From positions 714,389-778,388 of the forward strand of contig CM121343.1 of the NCBI GenBank assembly GCA_051530055.1: a stretch of 64,000 nucleotides of DNA. Reading direction: 5' to 3'. The stretch comes from Neoechinorhynchus agilis (taxonomy: Eukaryota; Animalia; Acanthocephala). The position numbers and the translations under genes are program-made. How positions within the stretch are numbered: the first letter of the stretch is position 1; every line of letters starts with the position of its first letter. Below are positions 4,950-42,030 of this stretch, in pieces. The notes below the pieces were generated by a model. That model had not been told where the DNA came from, ran no database searches, and saw nothing but the letters and a program-made list of their open reading frames with translations.

Positions 4950-7640
4950 TTTGAAAACCACCGGACGTTTCCTTCAAGAAATCAATAAAAATTCGATTTT
5001 CTCGACACGATATTATTACAAAGTGGGATGTTCAACAAGATCCTGGGGGTCTAAAAGAACAGAAAAGTAAATATCCGTTGTTGGACTTGAAAAAAACGTT
5101 AAATGGAGAAACAAAAGAGAAAAGTTTGATTGGAGGAAGACCGGACGCTTTCTTTATGAAATCACTAAAAATCCGATTTCCTTGATGAGAGATTGCTGAG
5201 AAGCGGGATATTCAAAAAGAACCTGAGAACAGAAATGTAAAAATTCGTTGTTAATCTAAAAAAACAAAAAACGTTCAATGCAGAGATAATAGAGAAAACT
5301 TTGATTGGAGGAAGACCGGACGCTTTCTTTATGAAATCAATAAAAATCCGATCTTCACGATGAGGAATTGTTGAGAAGCGGGATATTCAAAAAGATCCTG
5401 GTAGTCTAAGAGAACCGAAATTTAAAAATTCGTTGTTGGACTTGAAAAATCGGAAAGGTTGAATGCAGAGATAAAAGAGAAAACTTTGATTGGAGGAAGA
5501 CCGGAAGCTTTCCTTAAGAAATCAATAAAAATCCGATTTTCACGATGACTAATTGCTAAAGCGGGATAGTCAAAAAGATCTTGGAAGTCTAAGAACAGAA
5601 ATGTAAAAATTCGTTGCTGGACCTAAAAAAAGGAAACGTCCAATGGAGAAATAAAAGAGAAAAGTCTGATTGGAGGAAAGCCGGACGCTTTCTTTAAGAA
5701 ATCAGTAAAAATCCCATTTTCTCAATGAGGAATTGCTGAAAATCGGGATATTCAAAAAGATCGTGGAAGTCTAAGGGAACAGAAATGTAAAAATTCTTTG
5801 TTCGCCTTAAAAAAACCGGAAGCGTTCAATGCAGAGATAAAAGAGAAAACTTTGATTGGAGAAAGACCGGACGCTTTCTTTATGAAATCAGTAAAAATCC
5901 GATTTTCTCGATGAGGAATTGCTGAAAAGCGGGATATTAAAAAAGATCTTGGAAGTCTAAGAGAACAGAAATGTAAAAATTCGTTGTTGGACTTGAAAAA
6001 AAGGAAACGTTTAATGGAATTATAAAAGAGAAAAGTTTGATTGCAGGAAGACCGGACGCTTTCTTTATGAAATCAGTAAAAATCCGATTTCCTCGATGAC
6101 GAATTGACGAAAACCGGAATATTAAAAAAGATCCTGGAAGTCTTAGAGAACAGAAATGTAAAAATTCGTTGCTGGGCTTAAAAAAGCCGGAAACGTCGAA
6201 TGCAGAGACAAAAGAGAAAAGTTTGATTGCAGGAAGACCGGACGCTTTCTTTATGAAATCAGTAAAAATCCGATTTTCTCGATGAGGAATTGCTGAAAAG
6301 CGGGATTTTCAAAAAGATCTTGGAAGTCTACGAGAACAGAAATGTAAAAATTCGTTGTTGGGCTTAAAAAAAGGAAACGTTTAATGGAGATATAAAAGAG
6401 AAAAGTTTGATTGCAGGAAGACAGAACGCTTTCTTTATGAAATCAGTAAAAATCCGATTTCCTCGATGACGAATTGACGAAAACCGGGATATTAAAAAAG
6501 ATCCTGGAAGTCTAAGAGAACAGAAATGTAAAAATTCGTTGCTGGGCTTAAAAAAGCCGGAAACGTCGAATGCAGAGACAAAAGAGAAAAGTTTGATTGC
6601 AGGAAGACCGGACGCTTTCTTTATGAAATCAGTAAAAATCCGATTTTCTCGATGAGGAATTGCTGAAAAGCGGGATATTCAAAAAGATCCTGGAAGTCTA
6701 AGAGAACAGAAATGTAAAAATTCGTTGTTGGGCTTAAAAAAGCCGGAAACGTTGAATGCAGAGATAAAAGAGAAAAGTTTGATTGCAGGAAGACCGGACG
6801 CTTTCTTTATGAAATCAGTAAAAATCCGATTTTCTCGATGAGGAATTGCTGAAAAGCGGGATATTCAAAAAGATCTTGGAAGTCTAAGAGAACAGAAATG
6901 TAAAAATTCGTTGTTGGACTTAAAAAAAGAAACGTTTAATGGAATTATAAAAGAGAAAAGTTTGATTGCAGGAAGACCGGACGCTTTCTTTATGAAATCA
7001 GTAAAAATCCGATTTTCTCGATGAGGAATTGCTGAAAAGCGGGATATTAAAAAAGATCTTGGAAGTCTAAGAGAACAGAAATGTAAAAATTCGTTGTTGG
7101 ACTTGAAAAAAAGGAAACGTTTAATGGAATTATAAAAGAGAAAAGTTTGATTGCAGGAAGACCGGACGCTTTCTTTATGAAATCAGTAAAAATCCGATTT
7201 CCTCGATGACGAATTGACGAAAACCGGAATATTAAAAAAGATCCTGGAAGTCTAAGAGAACAGAAATTTAAAAATTCGTTGCTGGGCTTAAAAAAGCCGG
7301 AAACGTCCAATGGAGAAATAAAAAAGAAAAGTTTGATTGCAGGAAGACCGGACGCTTTCTTTGAGAAATCAATCAAAATCCCATTTTCTCGATGAGGAAT
7401 TGCTGAAAGGCTGGATATTCAAAAAGATCGTGGAAGTCTAAGATAACAGAAATGTAAAAATTCGTTGTTGGGCTTAAAAAAGCCGGAAACGTTGAATGCA
7501 GAGATAAAAGAGAAAATTTTGATTGCAGGAAGACAGAACGCTTTCTTCAAGAAATCAATAAAGATGCGATTTTCTTGATAGGGAATTGCTGAAAATCGGG
7601 AATATCCAAAAAGTCTAAGAGAACAGAATTGTAAAAATTC
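4950..7640. repeat. Tandem satellite array, ~185-bp unit, about 14-15 copies with two interspersed variants
   Basis: The anchor gacgctttct lies at 6241, 6611, 6797, 6980 and 7165 (period 183-186). Edge copies are more diverged than central ones. Confidence 0.95.
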
Positions 7641-9561
7641 TTGGTTGAATACCCAAATACAATCCGATTTCTAATTGAGCAAATAGATAAGAGATCTTTT
7701 TGTGGTATTAAGACTGGTGGCAATTCGTCCGACCGCAAAATCCCGAGGCCTCCCTCCCCGCCGTGGTGGTGGCACCAGACAAAAATGCGTGTCGGCCGCA
7801 ACGCAGACGCACGTCGTTGTTGTTCCATTAGGAGACGACAGAATGGAGGAGGATTCAGAGTTCTGTACGAATCCGGCCGGCGGCGGCGTCGTCGTCGTCG
7901 TCGTCGACAAGGGCATCGACGTGTGCATCCACGACCGTGGTTTCGTCACTCGCGCACTAAACATACACGCGAATGAGGTGCTGCGACGGACGTGGGATCG
8001 ATTTATGGAAGCTGATCGAGAAGTGCTTTTATACCGTTTTCAAATTACGACGTTATGAGATGATGGAATGTGGAGGATTTTATATGATGGAATGTAAGAC
8101 TTTGGATTGATTAGGTCTATTGAACCAAATATATGTAATTTATTATTGGGAAATAATCGGCCTTTACCGATGTTTAAATGGTTTTTCGAAATTTATGCCT
8201 TTGCGTTGTTGATACGGAATTTTTGGCGGACATTTAAGCTGCCTACAAAGTTCTATTTTCTCATTTTGATTAAATAATTGACTAGATAGTTGTATTTGCT
8301 AAGATATTCGTGGTATTGATTCACGATTATCCCCAATTGAATATCGTGCAAATTGCAATTCTACTTTTAATGATTGAAGCTTTCTCAATTATACAACCTT
8401 TAATAAGCGAAAATTCTAAAATGTAAGATTCTGACATTTTTGAGGTTATCTTCTGTGCAAACGAATTCTTTAAATGCCTTTCTATTTTTGATTCTTTTAA
8501 AGCACTTCATAAAAACAATGTCCGGTTCAGCTGAGATCATTTTATGCGATTTATCTCAGAAATAACCAACTTCAACATCCGCATATTCAGCGTAATAATT
8601 GAACACTCTTGTTTCCCTCAAGCCCCAGAACGTCTTCAATCTCATTATAGGGTTCGATGGTCTTTATTGCCTGAATTCACATCCATAAATTCTAAAAATA
8701 AATCTTTTCTTATTAAATTACGCGATTCTACTTTAATTTTGTCTGTTTTAATCACTTCTTCGGATGCTATGTGATATCTGTAGCCGTGATTTAAAAACTG
8801 GATAAATCACATTGAGTATTTGGTTATACGAAGCCGATCTCGTATCCGAATGGTGTCCGGTCTAAATTAATTCGAGGAAATAAACGACTCGTTCTTCTGT
8901 CCAAATCGAACGCCTGGGAACTTTAATGCAGTGGAACGTCGATTATCCGGATCAGAATGCTGTTCTACTCGATTTCCGTTACCAGAAGAGAATCTTACAG
9001 CGAAAAAACGAAGGTGCAGCATCTTACACAGAAAAATAAGTGATTATTTTCAATAATGAAGTTAAAATTACGTGATTCTACTTTAATTTTTCCTTTTTAA
9101 CCACTTTCCGCTCCCGAATGTTATTTGATATCTGTAGTCGAGCTCGAAAAACTGGACAAATGACATTGTGGTTTCGGTTATCCGAAACCGACCTCGTATC
9201 CGAATGGTGTCCGATCTAAATTAATTCGAGAAAATGAATGACTGGTTCTACTGTCCAAATCGAACGCCTGGGATTTTAATGCAGTGGAACGTCGATTATC
9301 CGGATCAGAATGCTGTCCTACTCAGCGTCTGTTACTAGAAAAGAATCTTACAGCGAAAAAACGAAGGTGTACAATCGTACACACTAAAATAAGTGATTAT
9401 TTTCAATAATAAAGATAAAATTACGTGATTCTACTTTAATTTTGCCTTTATTAACCACTCCTTCCCCCGACTGCTATTTGATATCTGTAGCCGATATTTA
9501 AATAGTTTATAACTCGCATTGAGTTTTAGGTTATACGAAACCGATCTCGTATCTGAATGGT

Positions 9562-12343
9562 AAACAACAACATTTCTTTGAACTTTTCTCTCACTTGAGA
9601 GGTCGTTCTTTTCAGCATTGTCAGCTTTCGTCTTCGTTCTTCTCCTTTCCGAGCGTCTTGAGATCTCCGCTCACACTGCCCTTCCACCTCTTCTTGTGCA
9701 TCCCTCTTCTCGTTTTCCCCTCGAGTTCGATTCTCCATGCGCTCTTCACTCAGACGTCTTCATCTGCTTGTGTCACCTGCAGGTACCATCGCATCCGCCT
9801 CTTAGCGATTGCCTCCTCGATCGGCTCGGCATTAAACAGCTTTCGCACCTCCTCATTGGGCACTCGATCTTTGCGTGTCAATCGTGCGGACCATCTCAGC
9901 ATCCGCATTTCGTTGACGGCTAATCGTTGAACGTCTTCCTTCTTTGTAGCCCACGTCTCTGCTCCGTACAGCATGGCGAGTAGCACTACTGCCTTGTACA
10001 CCCGCCGTTTGAACTTGTTCAGGAGTAGCTAGTCGCAAGGGATGGCTGTTGTCTTCCTCCAGTTGTTCCACCCGCATTGAACTCTTTGCCCGATCTCTGG
10101 TGCGAGCTCACATTGCATGCCTTGCATATCGAGGTTACCCGGCCCCATGTATTTCGTTTTACACCTGCTCACTCTCAATCCATTGCTCTCTAATCGCTGT
10201 CGCCAACTCTAGCAAATTCCTGAGCGTGTCCACGTCCATAGCTGTGAGTACCAACTCGTCCATGGTGCGTTCATTTCTCTTTCCGCATTTCCTAGGACGT
10301 CCATCACGATCGTGAACAAAAATGAGCTCAGGGTGGAACCCTGCTGCCGACTCACGGAGACTCGGAAATAGTCGGTGGTTCCGCTGTGGCATCGCACGCA
10401 GGTGTAGCACTCTCGATACATCGCTTGGATCGCCGCGTCATGGTGTTCGGGACAATTCCTTTTACTGAGCCATGCCCACACTGGATCGCTAGATCCCGAG
10501 GGACCGTGTCGTGCGCCCCTTCCAAATCGACAAACACACTACCTCTCATACAGCTGCCTTAGCACGAATATTGCGTCGATTGTGCTTCTGTCGGGCATGA
10601 ATCCCCGTTGATCCTTGCTGATTCTGATCTCCTCGCTAATCCTGTGATCGATCATTCGTTCCAACAGTTTCATTGTGTGCGACATGAGTTCGATGCCACG
10701 GTTGCTCCTATACTGCAGAGCATCTCCTTTGCTTTTGAAGATCAGTATCAATATGCTTCCCTGCCATTCCGACGGGATCTTTTCCTCCATATCTATCTTC
10801 TGAAAGAGCCTCGTGGGCAACTTTATTCCGAAGACTCCCAGGGATTGTCACAGCTCGATCGGAATGTTATCTGGACCGGCGTTAATACCAGTGTTCATTT
10901 TCCTGAGCAGTGCAGCAACCTCATCGTACGACTACGGCCTCGTCATATTGACATTCGGGTGTACGTCCTCTAGAAGCAGTCTGTCATTCTCAGTGTTCAG
11001 CAGAGTGCTGAAATATTCCTTCCACCTATCCAAAATGTCCGTGCATTGGTCCAGCGTCGTTCCATGGCTATCACTGATCATTTTGAGGTGCACGATATCC
11101 CGCGATTTTTTATCCCTGACTTTGGCCAACCTGAAGACCATATCTATACAACTCCCTCGCTGCAATTGTTAGAACAGGCCGTTATCGGCTTCCCTCTTGG
11201 CTTTGGCGCATTCTCATGCGGCCTTCCTTTTAGCCTGTTTTTAAGCGTCTGCATTCGAGGGCGAAGCGTCAAAATCCAATCTTTTCCTGGCTGACTTTTT
11301 CAAACTGATTGCGTCCTTGACGGCTGGATTCCACCACCATGCCTCTTTGTTTTGGGGTTTAGGTTTCCCCTATGTCATTCCTAGGATGTTCTTTGCTTCA
11401 CTACGAATCGATTCGGCTGTCTCATTCCACTAGCGTTCCAGTTCAGCCACATTATCGCTCAATTTCTGGGTAAGCACCATTTTGATCTTTTCCCTGAGTA
11501 CAGGATCCTTTAGCCTCCGGTGCAATGCTCGTTGTCGGCTGTTTGACTCTCCCTCCGATATTGAGGACCATCACGAGCACTCTATGTTGCGTCGTGCACT
11601 CCTCTCCTAGTATTATCTTGACATTCTGAACTTCACCCCGTCTCGCTATCGGATACAAAATGAAATCGATTTGGCTTGATCTTCCACGGCTTGAGTATGC
11701 GTAAAGGTGCCGTGGGTCTTTTTTGAAGTATTGGAAATACGATACTCCAACGCTGCTGCGTGATCCAATAGTCTTACACCCTCGGCGTCCCTTGATCCTA
11801 CATTGTGTCCTCCATGAGTTCGCTCGTATTCATCTCACGGCCCCTCGTGTCCGTTGAAATCGCCGGTTATCACGCATCGACCCTCCTTAGGCCTTGCCAC
11901 TTCCGATAAATCCAGCCAAAATTCCTTCTCCTCTTCACTACAACGGACTTGGGAGGCATACGCAGAAACTATTGTTGTGGCTTCGCCGTTAACGCTTACT
12001 TTCAGCGCCATCATCCGATCGATAGTCCGTGTCACCTCCACGACGCTGTCCACTAAATCCTTTGATACTATGACGCCCACTCCGTTCCTACAACTTGCTC
12101 CTCCACTATAGAACAGTTTAAATCCGTCGCCTAATTCTCTAGCCTTCCTTCCCCCTTTCCATTCGATTTTTCTCTTCCTCATCAAATCGGCCACTTCCCT
12201 GCTTCTCCCGGTCATTGAACCTACGTCCAGGGTTCCGATTCGTATGCCCAAGGTTTTACGGCCGGGTACCCTTCCTGACGCCAACCCTCCCCATTTATCC
12301 GGGCTTGGGACCGGCACCGAGTTACCCCCGATGGCTGGGTTCC
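9562..12343 (-). mobile_element. RTE-clade non-LTR retrotransposon (APE + RT), 5'-complete but frameshifted and internally deleted, with a 12-bp TSD
   Basis: APE N-terminus IRIGTLDVGSMTGRSREVADLMRKRK; RT motifs SNRGIELMSHTMKLLER, FVDLEGAHDTVPR and QQGSTLSSFLFTIVMD; thumb LYGAETWATKKED. TSD tatctgaatggt (9550-9561) / tatccgaatggt (12344-12355); short (GTT)n 3' tail. Confidence 0.93.
12279..12341 (-). ncRNA. Twister ribozyme (P1 type with P3), 3' cleavage product, at the RTE 5' end
   Basis: The minus strand reads AA-CCCA-GCC-ATCGGG GGTAA CTCGGT-GCCGG TCCCAAGC CCGG-ATAAA-TGGG-GAGGG-TTGG. This matches the twister core (GCCGGUCCCAAGCCCGGAUAAA...GAGGG) with intact P2 (CCCA/UGGG), P3 and P4. Confidence 0.88.
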
Positions 12344-13577
12344 TATCCGAATGGTGTCCGATCTAAATTAATTCGAGGAAATAAACGACTCGTTCTTCTG
12401 TCCAAATCGAACGCCTGAGATTTTCATACCATGGAACGTCGATTATCCGGATCAGAATGCTGTCCTACTCAACGTCTGTTACTGGAAGAGAATCTTACAG
12501 CGAAAAAACGAAGGTGCACCATCGTACACACTAACATAAGTGATTATTTTTAATAATAAAGTTAAAATTACGTGATTCTACTTAATTTTTCCTTCTTAAC
12601 CAGTTCACCCTCTCGACTGTTATTTGATATCTGTAGTCGAGCTTGAAAAACTAGACAAATCACATTGAGTTTTCGGTTATCCGAAACCGACCTCGTATCC
12701 GAATGGTGTCCGATCTAAATTAATTCGAGGAAATAAACGACTCGTTCTTCTATCCAAATCGAACGCCTGGGATTTTAATGCAGTGGAACGTCGATTATCC
12801 GGATCAGAATGCTGTCCTACTCAATTTCTGTTACTGGAAGAGAATCTTACAGCGAAAAAACGAAGGTGCACCATCGTACACACTAACATAAGTGATTATT
12901 TTTAATAATAAAGTTAAAATTACGTGATTCTACTTTAATTTTTGCCTTTTTTTTAACCACTTCACCCTCCCGAATGTTATGTGATATCTGTAGTCGAGCT
13001 TGAAAAACTAGATAAATCACATTGAGTTTTCGGTTATCCGAAACCGATCTCGTATCCGAGTGGTGTCCGATCTAAATTAATTCGCGGATAAACTAAGTTC
13101 TACTCTATTTAAAGTCACAACTTTATCATCAATGCAATAAAAGTATAGCATTCGGACAAATAACGTCTTTGTCTAATGGCTTTCTATTTATAAATTTCAT
13201 TGGATTTTGTGATGAAAATTCAAATTAAGACATTCTGAGTCTGTATGTGAATATTTGCCTCCGTGAAACACTTTTAATTTTTATAAGAATTTACTCTATT
13301 TTCTGCAACTTTCCTAAGTTATCTTTTGATTGTGTTGCATTTAAAAACGTGTAATGAGGAAATCGGTACAATGATACGAGCATAGTTCGGACAATCATTG
13401 TTTTAAAAGAAGAGATGTTTGAAAATTAGAGATTAGTTAGAATATTGTCATTGTTTGGAATGCAGTCGTTTTTAGTACGCATAAAAATTTCAAGTTTTTC
13501 AGGTTAAATTGTTGAATTTCAGTAAACAAAACTTTCTCTCTCTCTCTCAGACCCACGCGCAAGTACGCTGTTTAAAA

Positions 13578-40569: not shown

Positions 40570-41612
40570 AACCCGCTAAGGAGTGTGTAAAAAGACACCT
40601 GCCAAATCGACTGGCCCTGAAAATGGATAGCGCTAGAGACGTACAAATGGCTTGACGTGTAGAAGCGCGTATGCGGTGGTGTTGAGACTTGCACCGTGAG
40701 GTGGAGTGGAGCCGCCGCTAGTGCAGATCTTCGTGGTAGTAGCAAGTATTCAAATGAGAGCATTGAAGACTGAAGTGGAGAAAGGTTCCATGTGAACAAC
40801 ATTTGGACATGGATCAGCCGATCCTCGAAAGGGAATCGGGTTAATATTCCCAAGTCAGGATGCGGTTTATGCTCGATCTATTTAGATGCTCTTCTTGTGC
40901 AGATGATGTTCAGCATAAGTGGTGACACGAGCTATCCCAGAGAATAACTATACGAAGTCTGGAGAAGAGTTTTCTCTTGTTTGTTAGGAACTTTATCCGT
41001 GGAATTAGATCGTCTGTTGATAGGGTACACGTTCCGCAATGCAGCGCAATTCATGCGATGTACCGAGCGCTTCGCATTGTCCTTGAAAATCTGGGTGCGA
41101 GAATATTCAGACCGTACCTGTTCGTACTGATTTCCGCAGCAGGTCTCCAAGGTGAGTAGCCTCTAGTCGATAGGGAAACGTAGGCAAGGGAAGTCGGTAA
41201 ATTAGATCCGTAACTTCGGAAAAAGGATTGGCTCTACAAGCTGAGCTGGCCGGGCTGTCGCGAGAAGCGGTATGTTGTCGACTTTTGTATCTATCTCAGT
41301 TATATGCTCTTGCGAAAGAGTCGAATTCCAGGACGGAACTTGGTGCTGAGTACTGTGGGCAGCGATAGCTATGCTCCGCTTTTGTTCTGCGTATCCAAAC
41401 GGGTACGCTCGCTTCTTGCTCGGGGATCCGATCAACGTTAAACAGCTGGCCTAGAACTGGTATGGACAAGGGGAATCCACTTGTTTAATTAAAACAAAGC
41501 ATTGCGATAGCTGTAATCGGTGTTGACGCAATGTGATTTCTGCAAAAGTGCTCTGAATGTTAAAGTGAAGAAACTCATTTAAACGCGAATAAACGGCGTA
41601 CGTAACTATGAC
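40570..41612 (+). pseudogene. Orphan 28S rRNA gene fragment (~1 kb, D6-D8 region up to the R2 target site)
   Basis: Conserved LSU blocks CCGCTAAGGAGTGTGTAA, GTGCAGATCTT.GTGGTAGTAGCAA, CGAAAGGGAATCGGGTT, CCGCAGCAGGTCTCCAAGGTGA, GATCCGTAACTTCGG, TGTTTAATTAAAACAAAGCAT and AAACGGCG..GTAACTATGAC. It is flanked by transposon debris and has internal deletions. Confidence 0.93.
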
Positions 41613-42030
41613 AAACGATGAATCGCGTAATTCGCACGCGGAAGAAATCATGAAACAAAAGGAAAGGAAATAGCTTCCGAAACGCGAAGCAATAGCAAAA
41701 CGATTCAGCGTCCCTTTAGCCAACGTGGATACTACCGGATTCGACGCGGGTGCACGTGGAAGCTACGCTCCGATATTACTGAAAATGCTAAAACGAATGA
41801 ATTTAAGTTTTGGCTCAGCACTGAACATGTGCCAAACTGCTGCCGCGAAAACACTTATGACATACTACACGACTGAGCTTCTCAACAGGATTATGTGAGG
41901 TTCGTGATGGGATTTTCTCCCTGACGAAAACAGGAGTTCCTAAGGGTCCATAAACCCCGTAATTCATCCTACGGCGGCTCCGGTTCACACCCTAAGTCCA
42001 TTGATAGTGTGCGCCAATATCCGATCGCGG
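41613..42030 (+). mobile_element. 5'-truncated R2 retrotransposon (RLE C-terminus plus putative 3' UTR)
   Basis: The frame reads EEIMKQKERK*LPKREAIAKRFSVPLANVDTTGFDAGARGSY...LKRMNLS...* (stop 41896-41898), resembling the vertebrate R2 C-terminus (Y.P..EAIA...V..VD..GF..GARG). It follows the 28S sequence directly and in the same orientation. Confidence 0.8.

Follow-up and report, generated by a model that had tools for sequence, protein, structure and literature searches.

Twister ribozyme at the 5′ end of an old RTE-like retrotransposon copy in the acanthocephalan Neoechinorhynchus agilis

Where the RNA of a retrotransposon begins, and whether this beginning can be read from the junctions of its inserted copies, is a question raised by a locus in the genome of the acanthocephalan Neoechinorhynchus agilis. 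The stretch analysed, hereafter the window, comprises 64,000 nucleotides (NCBI GenBank assembly GCA_051530055.1, contig CM121343.1, positions 714,389 to 778,388 of the forward strand) and holds an RTE-like retrotransposon copy at 9562-12341, the 5′ end of which is occupied by a twister ribozyme. A preliminary description of the window, made from its letters, had placed the 5′ junction of this copy exactly at the ribozyme cleavage site and proposed that the copy had been reverse-transcribed from a self-cleaved RNA, in a further animal lineage. The explanation favoured here, with a probability of about 0.88, is that of an old and dead RTE-like non-LTR (non-long terminal repeat) retrotransposon of N. 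agilis, the RNA of which would begin with a twister ribozyme. Retrotransposon, ribozyme and junction are read on the minus strand throughout. Genome-wide searches were carried out in the N. agilis assembly (46,219,100 bases in 102 contigs), published as 102 contigs of 46.2 Mb in total with an N50 of 16.4 Mb and three major contigs, in a genome paper in which the word “transposable” does not occur (PMC12690905).

Twister core and shared 5′ ends

The ribozyme lies at 12281-12341 (minus strand; 61 nt), where it is present as the 3′ cleavage product with a complete core, as the preliminary description had it. From the cut onwards, it consists of the AA of loop L1 (12340-12341), the two strands of helix P2 (12336-12339 with 12290-12293), the P3 hairpin of 6-7 bp (12315-12333), helix P4 with its loop L4 (12299-12314), the motif GAGGG (12285-12289) and the 3′ strand of helix P1, namely UUGG (12281-12284). 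In the window copy, P2 (CCCA/UGGG) forms 4/4 Watson-Crick pairs and P4 (CCG/CGG) 3/3, while the L2 dinucleotide GC, the P3 hairpin, L4 with GUCCCAAGCC, AUAAA, GAGGG and UUGG are likewise intact. Both pseudoknot partners are present, i.e., GC with GC and CCC with GGG, the bases that make up the pseudoknots T1 and T2 of published twister structures. As such, the whole conserved core, that is the cleavage-site AA, GC, the GUCCCAAGCC loop, UAAA and GAGGG, is found in this copy, and a 17-nt part of it is found at a single place in the window (0 expected).

The twister-P1 covariance model of Rfam (RF03160; curated gathering cut-off of 67.2 bits) aligns over its full length (1-68) with 12281-12346, at 59.0 bits and an E-value of 4.6e-13, in a permissive local scan covering positions 12150-12450 of the window. 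Over the whole 46.2-Mb genome, the same site is the second best among 44 matches (E-value of 1.7e-11), and the same search in 14 control genomes returned zero matches. The search with this model, put forward in the preliminary description as a check, was thus answered favourably as regards alignment and E-value but not as regards the score, as the window copy stays below the cut-off, like all the others (0/44 reach it). A default Rfam scan of the window consequently misses the twister. The missing P1 and a divergent P3 stem and loop probably account for the low score. All upper-case consensus positions of RF03160 are matched with a sole exception, the base 5′ of the cut, which is G where the consensus has U; this base has been shown experimentally to be free to vary (Liu et al., 2021, PMC8501958). 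With a family model built from 23 local twisters, the window copy reaches 86.0 bits, the second score of at least 85 twister heads genome-wide, and these sub-threshold matches, at least 85 in number, find an explanation as heads of retrotransposons.

The twister-headed copies in the genome fall into two families with two twister variants, namely P2 CCCA/UGGG with P3 in family 1 and P2 CUCC/GGAG without P3 in family 2, the latter being short. Helices were scored from sequence anchors, since the MAFFT alignment was wrong for family 2 and for the P3 variants. Over 23 copies, the cells expected to pair do so in 93.5% of cases for P2, 91.3% for P4, 97.8% for GC/GC and 91.3% for CCC/GGG; taken together, 91.8% of cells are paired in the twister register versus at most 49.5% when the partners are slid. 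True compensatory changes were found only between the families, in P2 (CCCA/UGGG versus CUCC/GGAG); within family 1, no covariation exceeded that of shuffle controls, so that it is unusable as evidence of selection. Minimum free energy folding of the 61-nt ribozyme was no better than that of shuffled sequences (z = +0.52), a result taken to be uninformative because the fold depends on two pseudoknots, which lie beyond such modelling. A non-twister helix, GGUGCC/GGCAUC, was proposed by unconstrained RNAalifold over 97 nt and rejected, its covariation term being positive.

The 5′ ends were considered at the family level in 51 independent copies of the two families. In all 51, homology starts at AAC, directly after the scissile bond, with the same junction rule for both twister variants, and none extends upstream of the cleavage site; their upstream 20-mers have 5.57 of 20 positions in common, which is about chance. 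The 5′ end of the window copy likewise coincides with the twister scissile bond, and the pile-up of 5′ ends at the cleavage-site AA anticipated by the preliminary description is found genome-wide. In eight siblings, moreover, the target-site duplication directly abuts AA with zero extra bases. Its length is 19 nt in L043 and in L045, 18 nt in L048, 15 nt in L050 (where the left end is ambiguous), 12 nt in L056 and in L031 and, for the short family, 14 nt in L062 and 16 nt in L064. Many other copies have lost their 5′ part, with truncation points scattered along the interior of the element, a common feature of long interspersed nuclear elements (LINEs). Because 51 copies of two families start at the scissile bond, reverse transcription of a self-cleaved RNA is the simplest reading of the shared 5′ ends, in line with what has been shown experimentally for Perere-3, an RTE element of Schistosoma mansoni (PMC8501958).

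A shared 5′ end could also be the start site of an internal promoter, in the style of jockey, I or L1 elements, with the twister as a relic and the extra Gs as copies of the cap. Such extra Gs are known at full-length L1 junctions, two Gs precede AA in the window copy and G is the commonest base at position -1, occurring in 17/51 copies versus about 19.5% expected (window G+C of 39.4%). A promoter start would nonetheless have to fall exactly on the scissile bond in both families, different as their twister variants are, and no part of the element is better conserved than the ribozyme core. The G at -1 in L043 and L048 lies within the duplication and is therefore derived from the target, which suggests that the excess of G reflects a target-site preference and not untemplated addition. 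In Schistosoma, besides, the cut at the same bond was mapped in vitro, shown in reporters and found to be required for downstream expression (PMC8501958). An origin of the 5′ end at an internal promoter is accordingly considered very improbable.

Insertion into a host satellite

The element interrupts an AT-rich tandem satellite of the host with a 353-bp unit, the downstream part of which extends over 8715-9561 (Tandem Repeats Finder period of 353, 2.4 copies) and the upstream part from 12344 to at least 13068. A 12-mer present once per unit is located at 8843, 9197 and 9550 and, beyond the element, at 12344, 12696 and 13053. Two of these occurrences flank the element, i.e., the 5′ copy of the target-site duplication, ACCATTCGGATA, at 12344-12355 (minus strand), and the 3′ copy, ACCATTCAGATA, at 9550-9561 (minus strand), which is followed by CG of the satellite (9548-9549). 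The distance between them, 12344 - 9550 = 2794, equals the element plus one 12-mer, and its removal restores the 352/353-bp period. Every uninterrupted unit reads GGACACCATTCGGATA-CGAG (GGATA-CGAG). Since the intact units show the pre-insertion sequence and thereby act as empty sites, and since the phase is restored, both the insertion and its target-site duplication are proven.

The duplication could in principle be an artefact of the tandem repeat, the flanks stemming from neighbouring units and the true boundaries lying elsewhere. With a motif recurring every 352-353 bp, a naive search does find longer false duplications; a 22-nt one returned by automatic search was caused by the satellite and ruled out by phase arithmetic, by which the duplication of the window copy was defined instead. 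The same arithmetic leads to rejection of the artefact, as the flanking copies are in the same unit phase, the 2794-bp interval holds no more than the element and one 12-mer, and the flanking 12-mers lie 352 and 353 bp from those of the adjacent units. Furthermore, the 3′ flank begins again with ACCATTC, although CGAG would come next in a unit without duplication, and both ends of the element match the family ends. The chance that the duplication is spurious is hence regarded as negligible.

At the 5′ junction (12359-12333, minus strand), the sequence reads ...GGACACCATTCGGATA, then GG, then AACCCAGCC..., in the order of duplication, GG and element start already noted in the preliminary description; GG stands at 12342-12343, its base at 12342 lying immediately 5′ of the scissile bond. 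At the 3′ junction, ...AAATGTTGTTGTTT is followed by ACCATTCAGATA-CGAGATCGG. How far the duplication reaches depends on GG. If it is 12 nt long, it is offset from AA by 2 nt; if it is 14 nt long (ACCATTCGGATACG), C having been replaced by G in the 5′ copy, the adjacency to AA is exact. Under either reading, the 3′ copy (9550-9561) differs from the 5′ copy at one base, by a G-to-A change.

The presence of GG had been ascribed to two untemplated nucleotides, which the reverse transcriptase would have added on ending the first strand, next to a 12-nt duplication. Untemplated additions are well known at LINE 5′ junctions, and here the first base of GG mismatches the CG of the target, no other copy has GG, BLAST matches of siblings start at element base 2-3, and the copies L053 and L061 of the short family may carry 1-2 extra T. 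Conversely, the second G matches the target, and the eight well-defined siblings described above have no extra base. The insertion is also old, the window copy being 79-93% identical to the other copies (84 matching pieces in the genome), and with one mismatch already present in the 12-mer, a further substitution would be unremarkable. While GG itself stands as described, an untemplated origin is therefore the less probable of the two accounts, without being far-fetched, and a 14-nt duplication with one C-to-G change, which explains the junction at least as well, is favoured at modest odds, a rough likelihood estimate pointing the same way.

A dead RTE-like element and the proposed origin of its 5′ end

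The copy spans 2780 nt (9562-12341, minus strand), or 2782 nt with GG, and has a G+C content of 50.3% versus 39.4% for the window. Compared with its siblings, which have 126-160 nt at this point, it bears an internal deletion of about 160 nt at 12245/12246, and has thereby lost the remainder of the leader, its ATG start codon and ~47 initial codons. A fragment of the apurinic-type endonuclease (APE) domain follows at 11853-12113 (minus strand; Pfam Exo_endo_phos, 24.7 bits for a cut-off of 24.5), and a 21-nt deletion at 12161/12162 has removed the ILGVQEI segment containing the endonuclease QE motif. Homologues of the APE domain, 44-50% identical, occur in Necator, Nippostrongylus, Centruroides and Silurus; the names of related proteins gave no clade label, being “uncharacterized” or absent. 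The reverse transcriptase is represented by a fragment at 10557-10709 (minus strand; RVT_1, 20.8 bits, E-value of 3.4e-4, 93-amino acid piece) in a region, ~9750-10900, split into many short frames, with stops and frameshifts throughout. The open reading frame (ORF) ends with TGA at 9621-9623, after which comes a 3′ untranslated region (UTR) of 59 nt (9562-9623 with the stop, minus strand) comprising a stem-loop, CTCTC-AAGT-GAGAG (9588-9601, minus strand), and a simple-repeat tail, G(TTG)2TTT, of the (GTT)n type and without poly(A) (9562-9571, minus strand). The 3′ end of siblings is likewise ...aaagaaatgttgttgt, directly before the 3′ copy of the duplication.

The organisation prior to decay can be followed in the sibling L049, which has an ATG at element position 112, 51 nt beyond the ribozyme. 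Its frame continues directly into the APE domain (...IRIGTLNVGSMTGRS...IFGVQEIRWK...), so that there is no room for ORF1. Siblings with the canonical tail measure about 2.9-3.0 kb between duplications (2859 in L031, 2928 in L045 and 2961 in L049). The element thus exhibits a single ORF with APE then RT (reverse transcriptase), no ORF1, a length of ~3 kb, a very short 3′ UTR and a simple-repeat tail without poly(A). Compact size, short 3′ UTR and simple-repeat tail are said to have been described as RTE-defining traits by Malik and Eickbush in 1998. The name RTE used in the preliminary description is accordingly kept in the form RTE-like, with reference to architecture. With its stops, its lost start codon and its lost endonuclease QE motif, the window copy is dead.

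The insertion of this copy would have proceeded as follows. A source copy would have been transcribed by read-through from upstream DNA, and the twister would have severed the bond that joins the flank to the initial A of AA-P2, giving a 5′-OH RNA that starts with AACCC; the equivalent cut has been shown for Perere-3 (PMC8501958). The endonuclease and reverse transcriptase of the element would then have nicked a unit of the 353-bp satellite and reverse-transcribed the RNA right up to its 5′ terminus, repair giving rise to the 12- or 14-bp target-site duplication visible in the sequence. The ~160 nt of leader with the ATG and the 21 nt of endonuclease would have been lost later, while many stops were gained. 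Every full-length daughter would carry a complete ribozyme, since all that catalysis requires is situated 3′ of the cut, and the P1 5′ strand alone would be replaced, by whichever flank the daughter copy lands in.

Several points weigh against this account. About six independent copies (L057, L063, L075, L080, L085 and L086) have their 5′ end at AGCC, which is 5 nt within the ribozyme. The Rfam score of the ribozyme is under the gathering cut-off, and two bases separate AA from the duplication of the window copy if the latter is strictly taken as 12 nt. The fold could be conserved within family 1 by descent alone, and self-cleavage in N. agilis is deduced from position and homology. Placement in the RTE clade draws on architecture and the shared ribozyme head, hence the wording RTE-like. 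Lastly, an intact ORF was found in 0/36 copies surveyed, with 413 amino acids for the longest open frame, and the family may be extinct.

The best described counterpart is Perere-3, which has twister variants at its 5′ end that cleave to leave 5′-AA, duplications that abut AA and supply the P1 5′ strand, and a twister active both in vitro and in reporter constructs, in which cleavage is needed for expression of the downstream reporter (PMC8501958). The N. agilis element resembles it in having a sense-strand twister at the extreme 5′ end, a duplication abutting the cleavage-site AA with a flank that supplies the P1 5′ strand, a single APE-RT ORF, a short tandem-repeat 3′ tail and a GAGGG-UUGG 3′ side, P2 CUCC/GGAG being shared with family 2 as well. 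The AUG is found at position 112 in N. agilis versus ~112 or ~147 nt after the T-variant in Perere-3. The two differ in the host phylum (Acanthocephala versus Platyhelminthes), the P2 of family 1 (CCCA/UGGG), the tail, which is (GTT)n in N. agilis versus (GTAA)n in Perere-3, and the copy number, from tens to a few hundred versus thousands; in addition, the N. agilis family was seen without an intact copy and is known here from sequence. The mechanism having already been published for Perere-3, what is new is the animal group, as the preliminary description had announced, and not the principle. The starts at AGCC in N. agilis, which form a small second pile-up of 5′ ends, resemble the 0A/1A T-variants described by Liu et al., which are inactive.

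The P1 helix, the leader and a second family

As the preliminary description stated, the 5′ strand of P1 is missing; the element itself contains the 3′ strand UUGG alone and hence lacks the closing helix of RF03160. The flank of the window copy, AUAG, offers three weak pairs with UUGG (U.G, A-U and G.U), as a random flank does. Over the 51 copies, 0, 1, 2, 3 and 4 pairs between the four flank bases and UUGG are found in 3, 10, 19, 16 and 3 copies, respectively, i.e., a mean of 2.12/4 versus 2.0 expected for random sequence. With such chance-like pairing, there is no sign among these 51 copies of master copies endowed with a designed P1 5′ strand, and the CCAA-like strand envisaged for them is not borne out. 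The further proposal that a copy lacking P1 should be unable to cleave again does not hold either, as P1 is dispensable and twisters without it cleave at almost the wild-type rate (PMC5408937), while imperfections in P1 left cleavage unreduced when natural twister ribozymes were assayed in high throughput (PMC11662667); G^AA substrates are also cleaved (PMC8501958). The N. agilis copies constitute a natural data set in which elements never carry their own P1 strand, which fits the biochemical dispensability of P1.

Because P1 is dispensable, the twister is functionally like the hepatitis delta virus (HDV)-like ribozymes that head R2, RTE, baggins and L1Tc elements (reviewed in PMC6765202). In both cases, 5′ self-cleavage would free the element RNA from an upstream co-transcript, the parts needed lying 3′ of the cut; class and fold are different, however, and HDV-like ribozymes have no upstream helix whereas the twister has a dispensable P1. 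A close parallel is the mini-twister, a core without P1 from which a single nucleotide may be all that is cleaved off (Kosutic et al., 2015, as related in PMC5408937). Like this construct, every N. agilis genomic copy is without a designed P1, but the mini-twister is an engineered env22 construct of measured activity while the N. agilis copies are natural and known as sequences.

Directly after the ribozyme, at 12246-12280 (minus strand), lies a conserved leader, CGUCAGGAAGGG.A.CCGGCCGUAAAAC..., kept in families 1 and 2, and some 30 nt of it (CGUCAGGAAGGGCAUCCGGCCGUAAAA) are conserved in both (L001-L066). The N-terminus of a protein of the scorpion Centruroides vittatus, GLASGRASGRKT, implies the same leader bases, and proteins beginning with MPVPSPDK(W)GGL correspond to a translation of the invariant core, while in N. 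agilis the leader bases lie outside the ORF frame. From these N-termini, scorpions and other relatives may be expected to carry twisters too. The leader is possibly a functional RNA module. A candidate hairpin within it shows one switch from C-G to U-A, in five related copies, and was equalled in 16-19 of 500 shuffles, which makes it too weak a case.

Family 2 consists of non-coding twister-headed elements of ~300-335 nt, with at least 59 pieces in the genome, most of them starting at base 1. Its twister is compact, without P3, and has P2 CUCC/GGAG as in Schistosoma; it is followed by the RTE-like leader, and a LINE-like tail with the CTCTC...GAGAG stem-loop makes up the 3′ end. Target-site duplications of 12-16 nt abut AA. 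Examples are L062 (4255-4577, minus strand), L064, L053 and L061, and tandem arrays are found at C1:4572719-4573979 and C1:4587361-4589797. Family 2 looks like either the twister counterpart of R2 SIDEs or a short interspersed nuclear element (SINE) derived from RTE. In R2 SIDEs, internal deletion has left short elements in which the 5′ ribozyme is retained (Eickbush and Eickbush, 2012, as summarised in PMC6765202). Family 2 is similar in that the head with its ribozyme has been kept, along with a portion of the leader and a 3′ stem-loop tail like that of LINEs, and in having duplications, and dissimilar in carrying a twister instead of an HDV-like ribozyme and in inserting without site specificity.

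With 51 copies, two ribozyme variants and non-coding hitch-hikers, a second phylum obeys the same junction rule to the exact base, which suggests an old and general association of twisters with RTE elements and not an oddity of flukes. A wider reading can be advanced tentatively, at somewhat less than even odds. The twister head and the ~30-nt leader would together form an ancient, P1-independent cassette for 5′ processing and translation in one RTE lineage, present in flatworms, acanthocephalans and, from translated N-termini, scorpions, and taken over in N. agilis by trans-mobilised non-coding elements of ~320 nt. In that event, UUGG, which is made of G and U only, would be a “promiscuous” strand, kept because its partner is a new flank at each insertion. 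To our knowledge, Schistosoma mansoni is the only species in which a biological role of eukaryotic twisters has been shown experimentally; if true, the cassette would provide one general biological role for most animal twisters.

Elsewhere in the window, a separate 186-bp tandem repeat is located at 7002-7613, and 40735-41658 (plus strand) corresponds to a partial 28S rRNA (Rfam LSU, i.e., large subunit, positions 1456-2341). This 28S fragment is one of at least 40 dispersed copies, 83-93% identical and with the same ends, many of them near contig ends.

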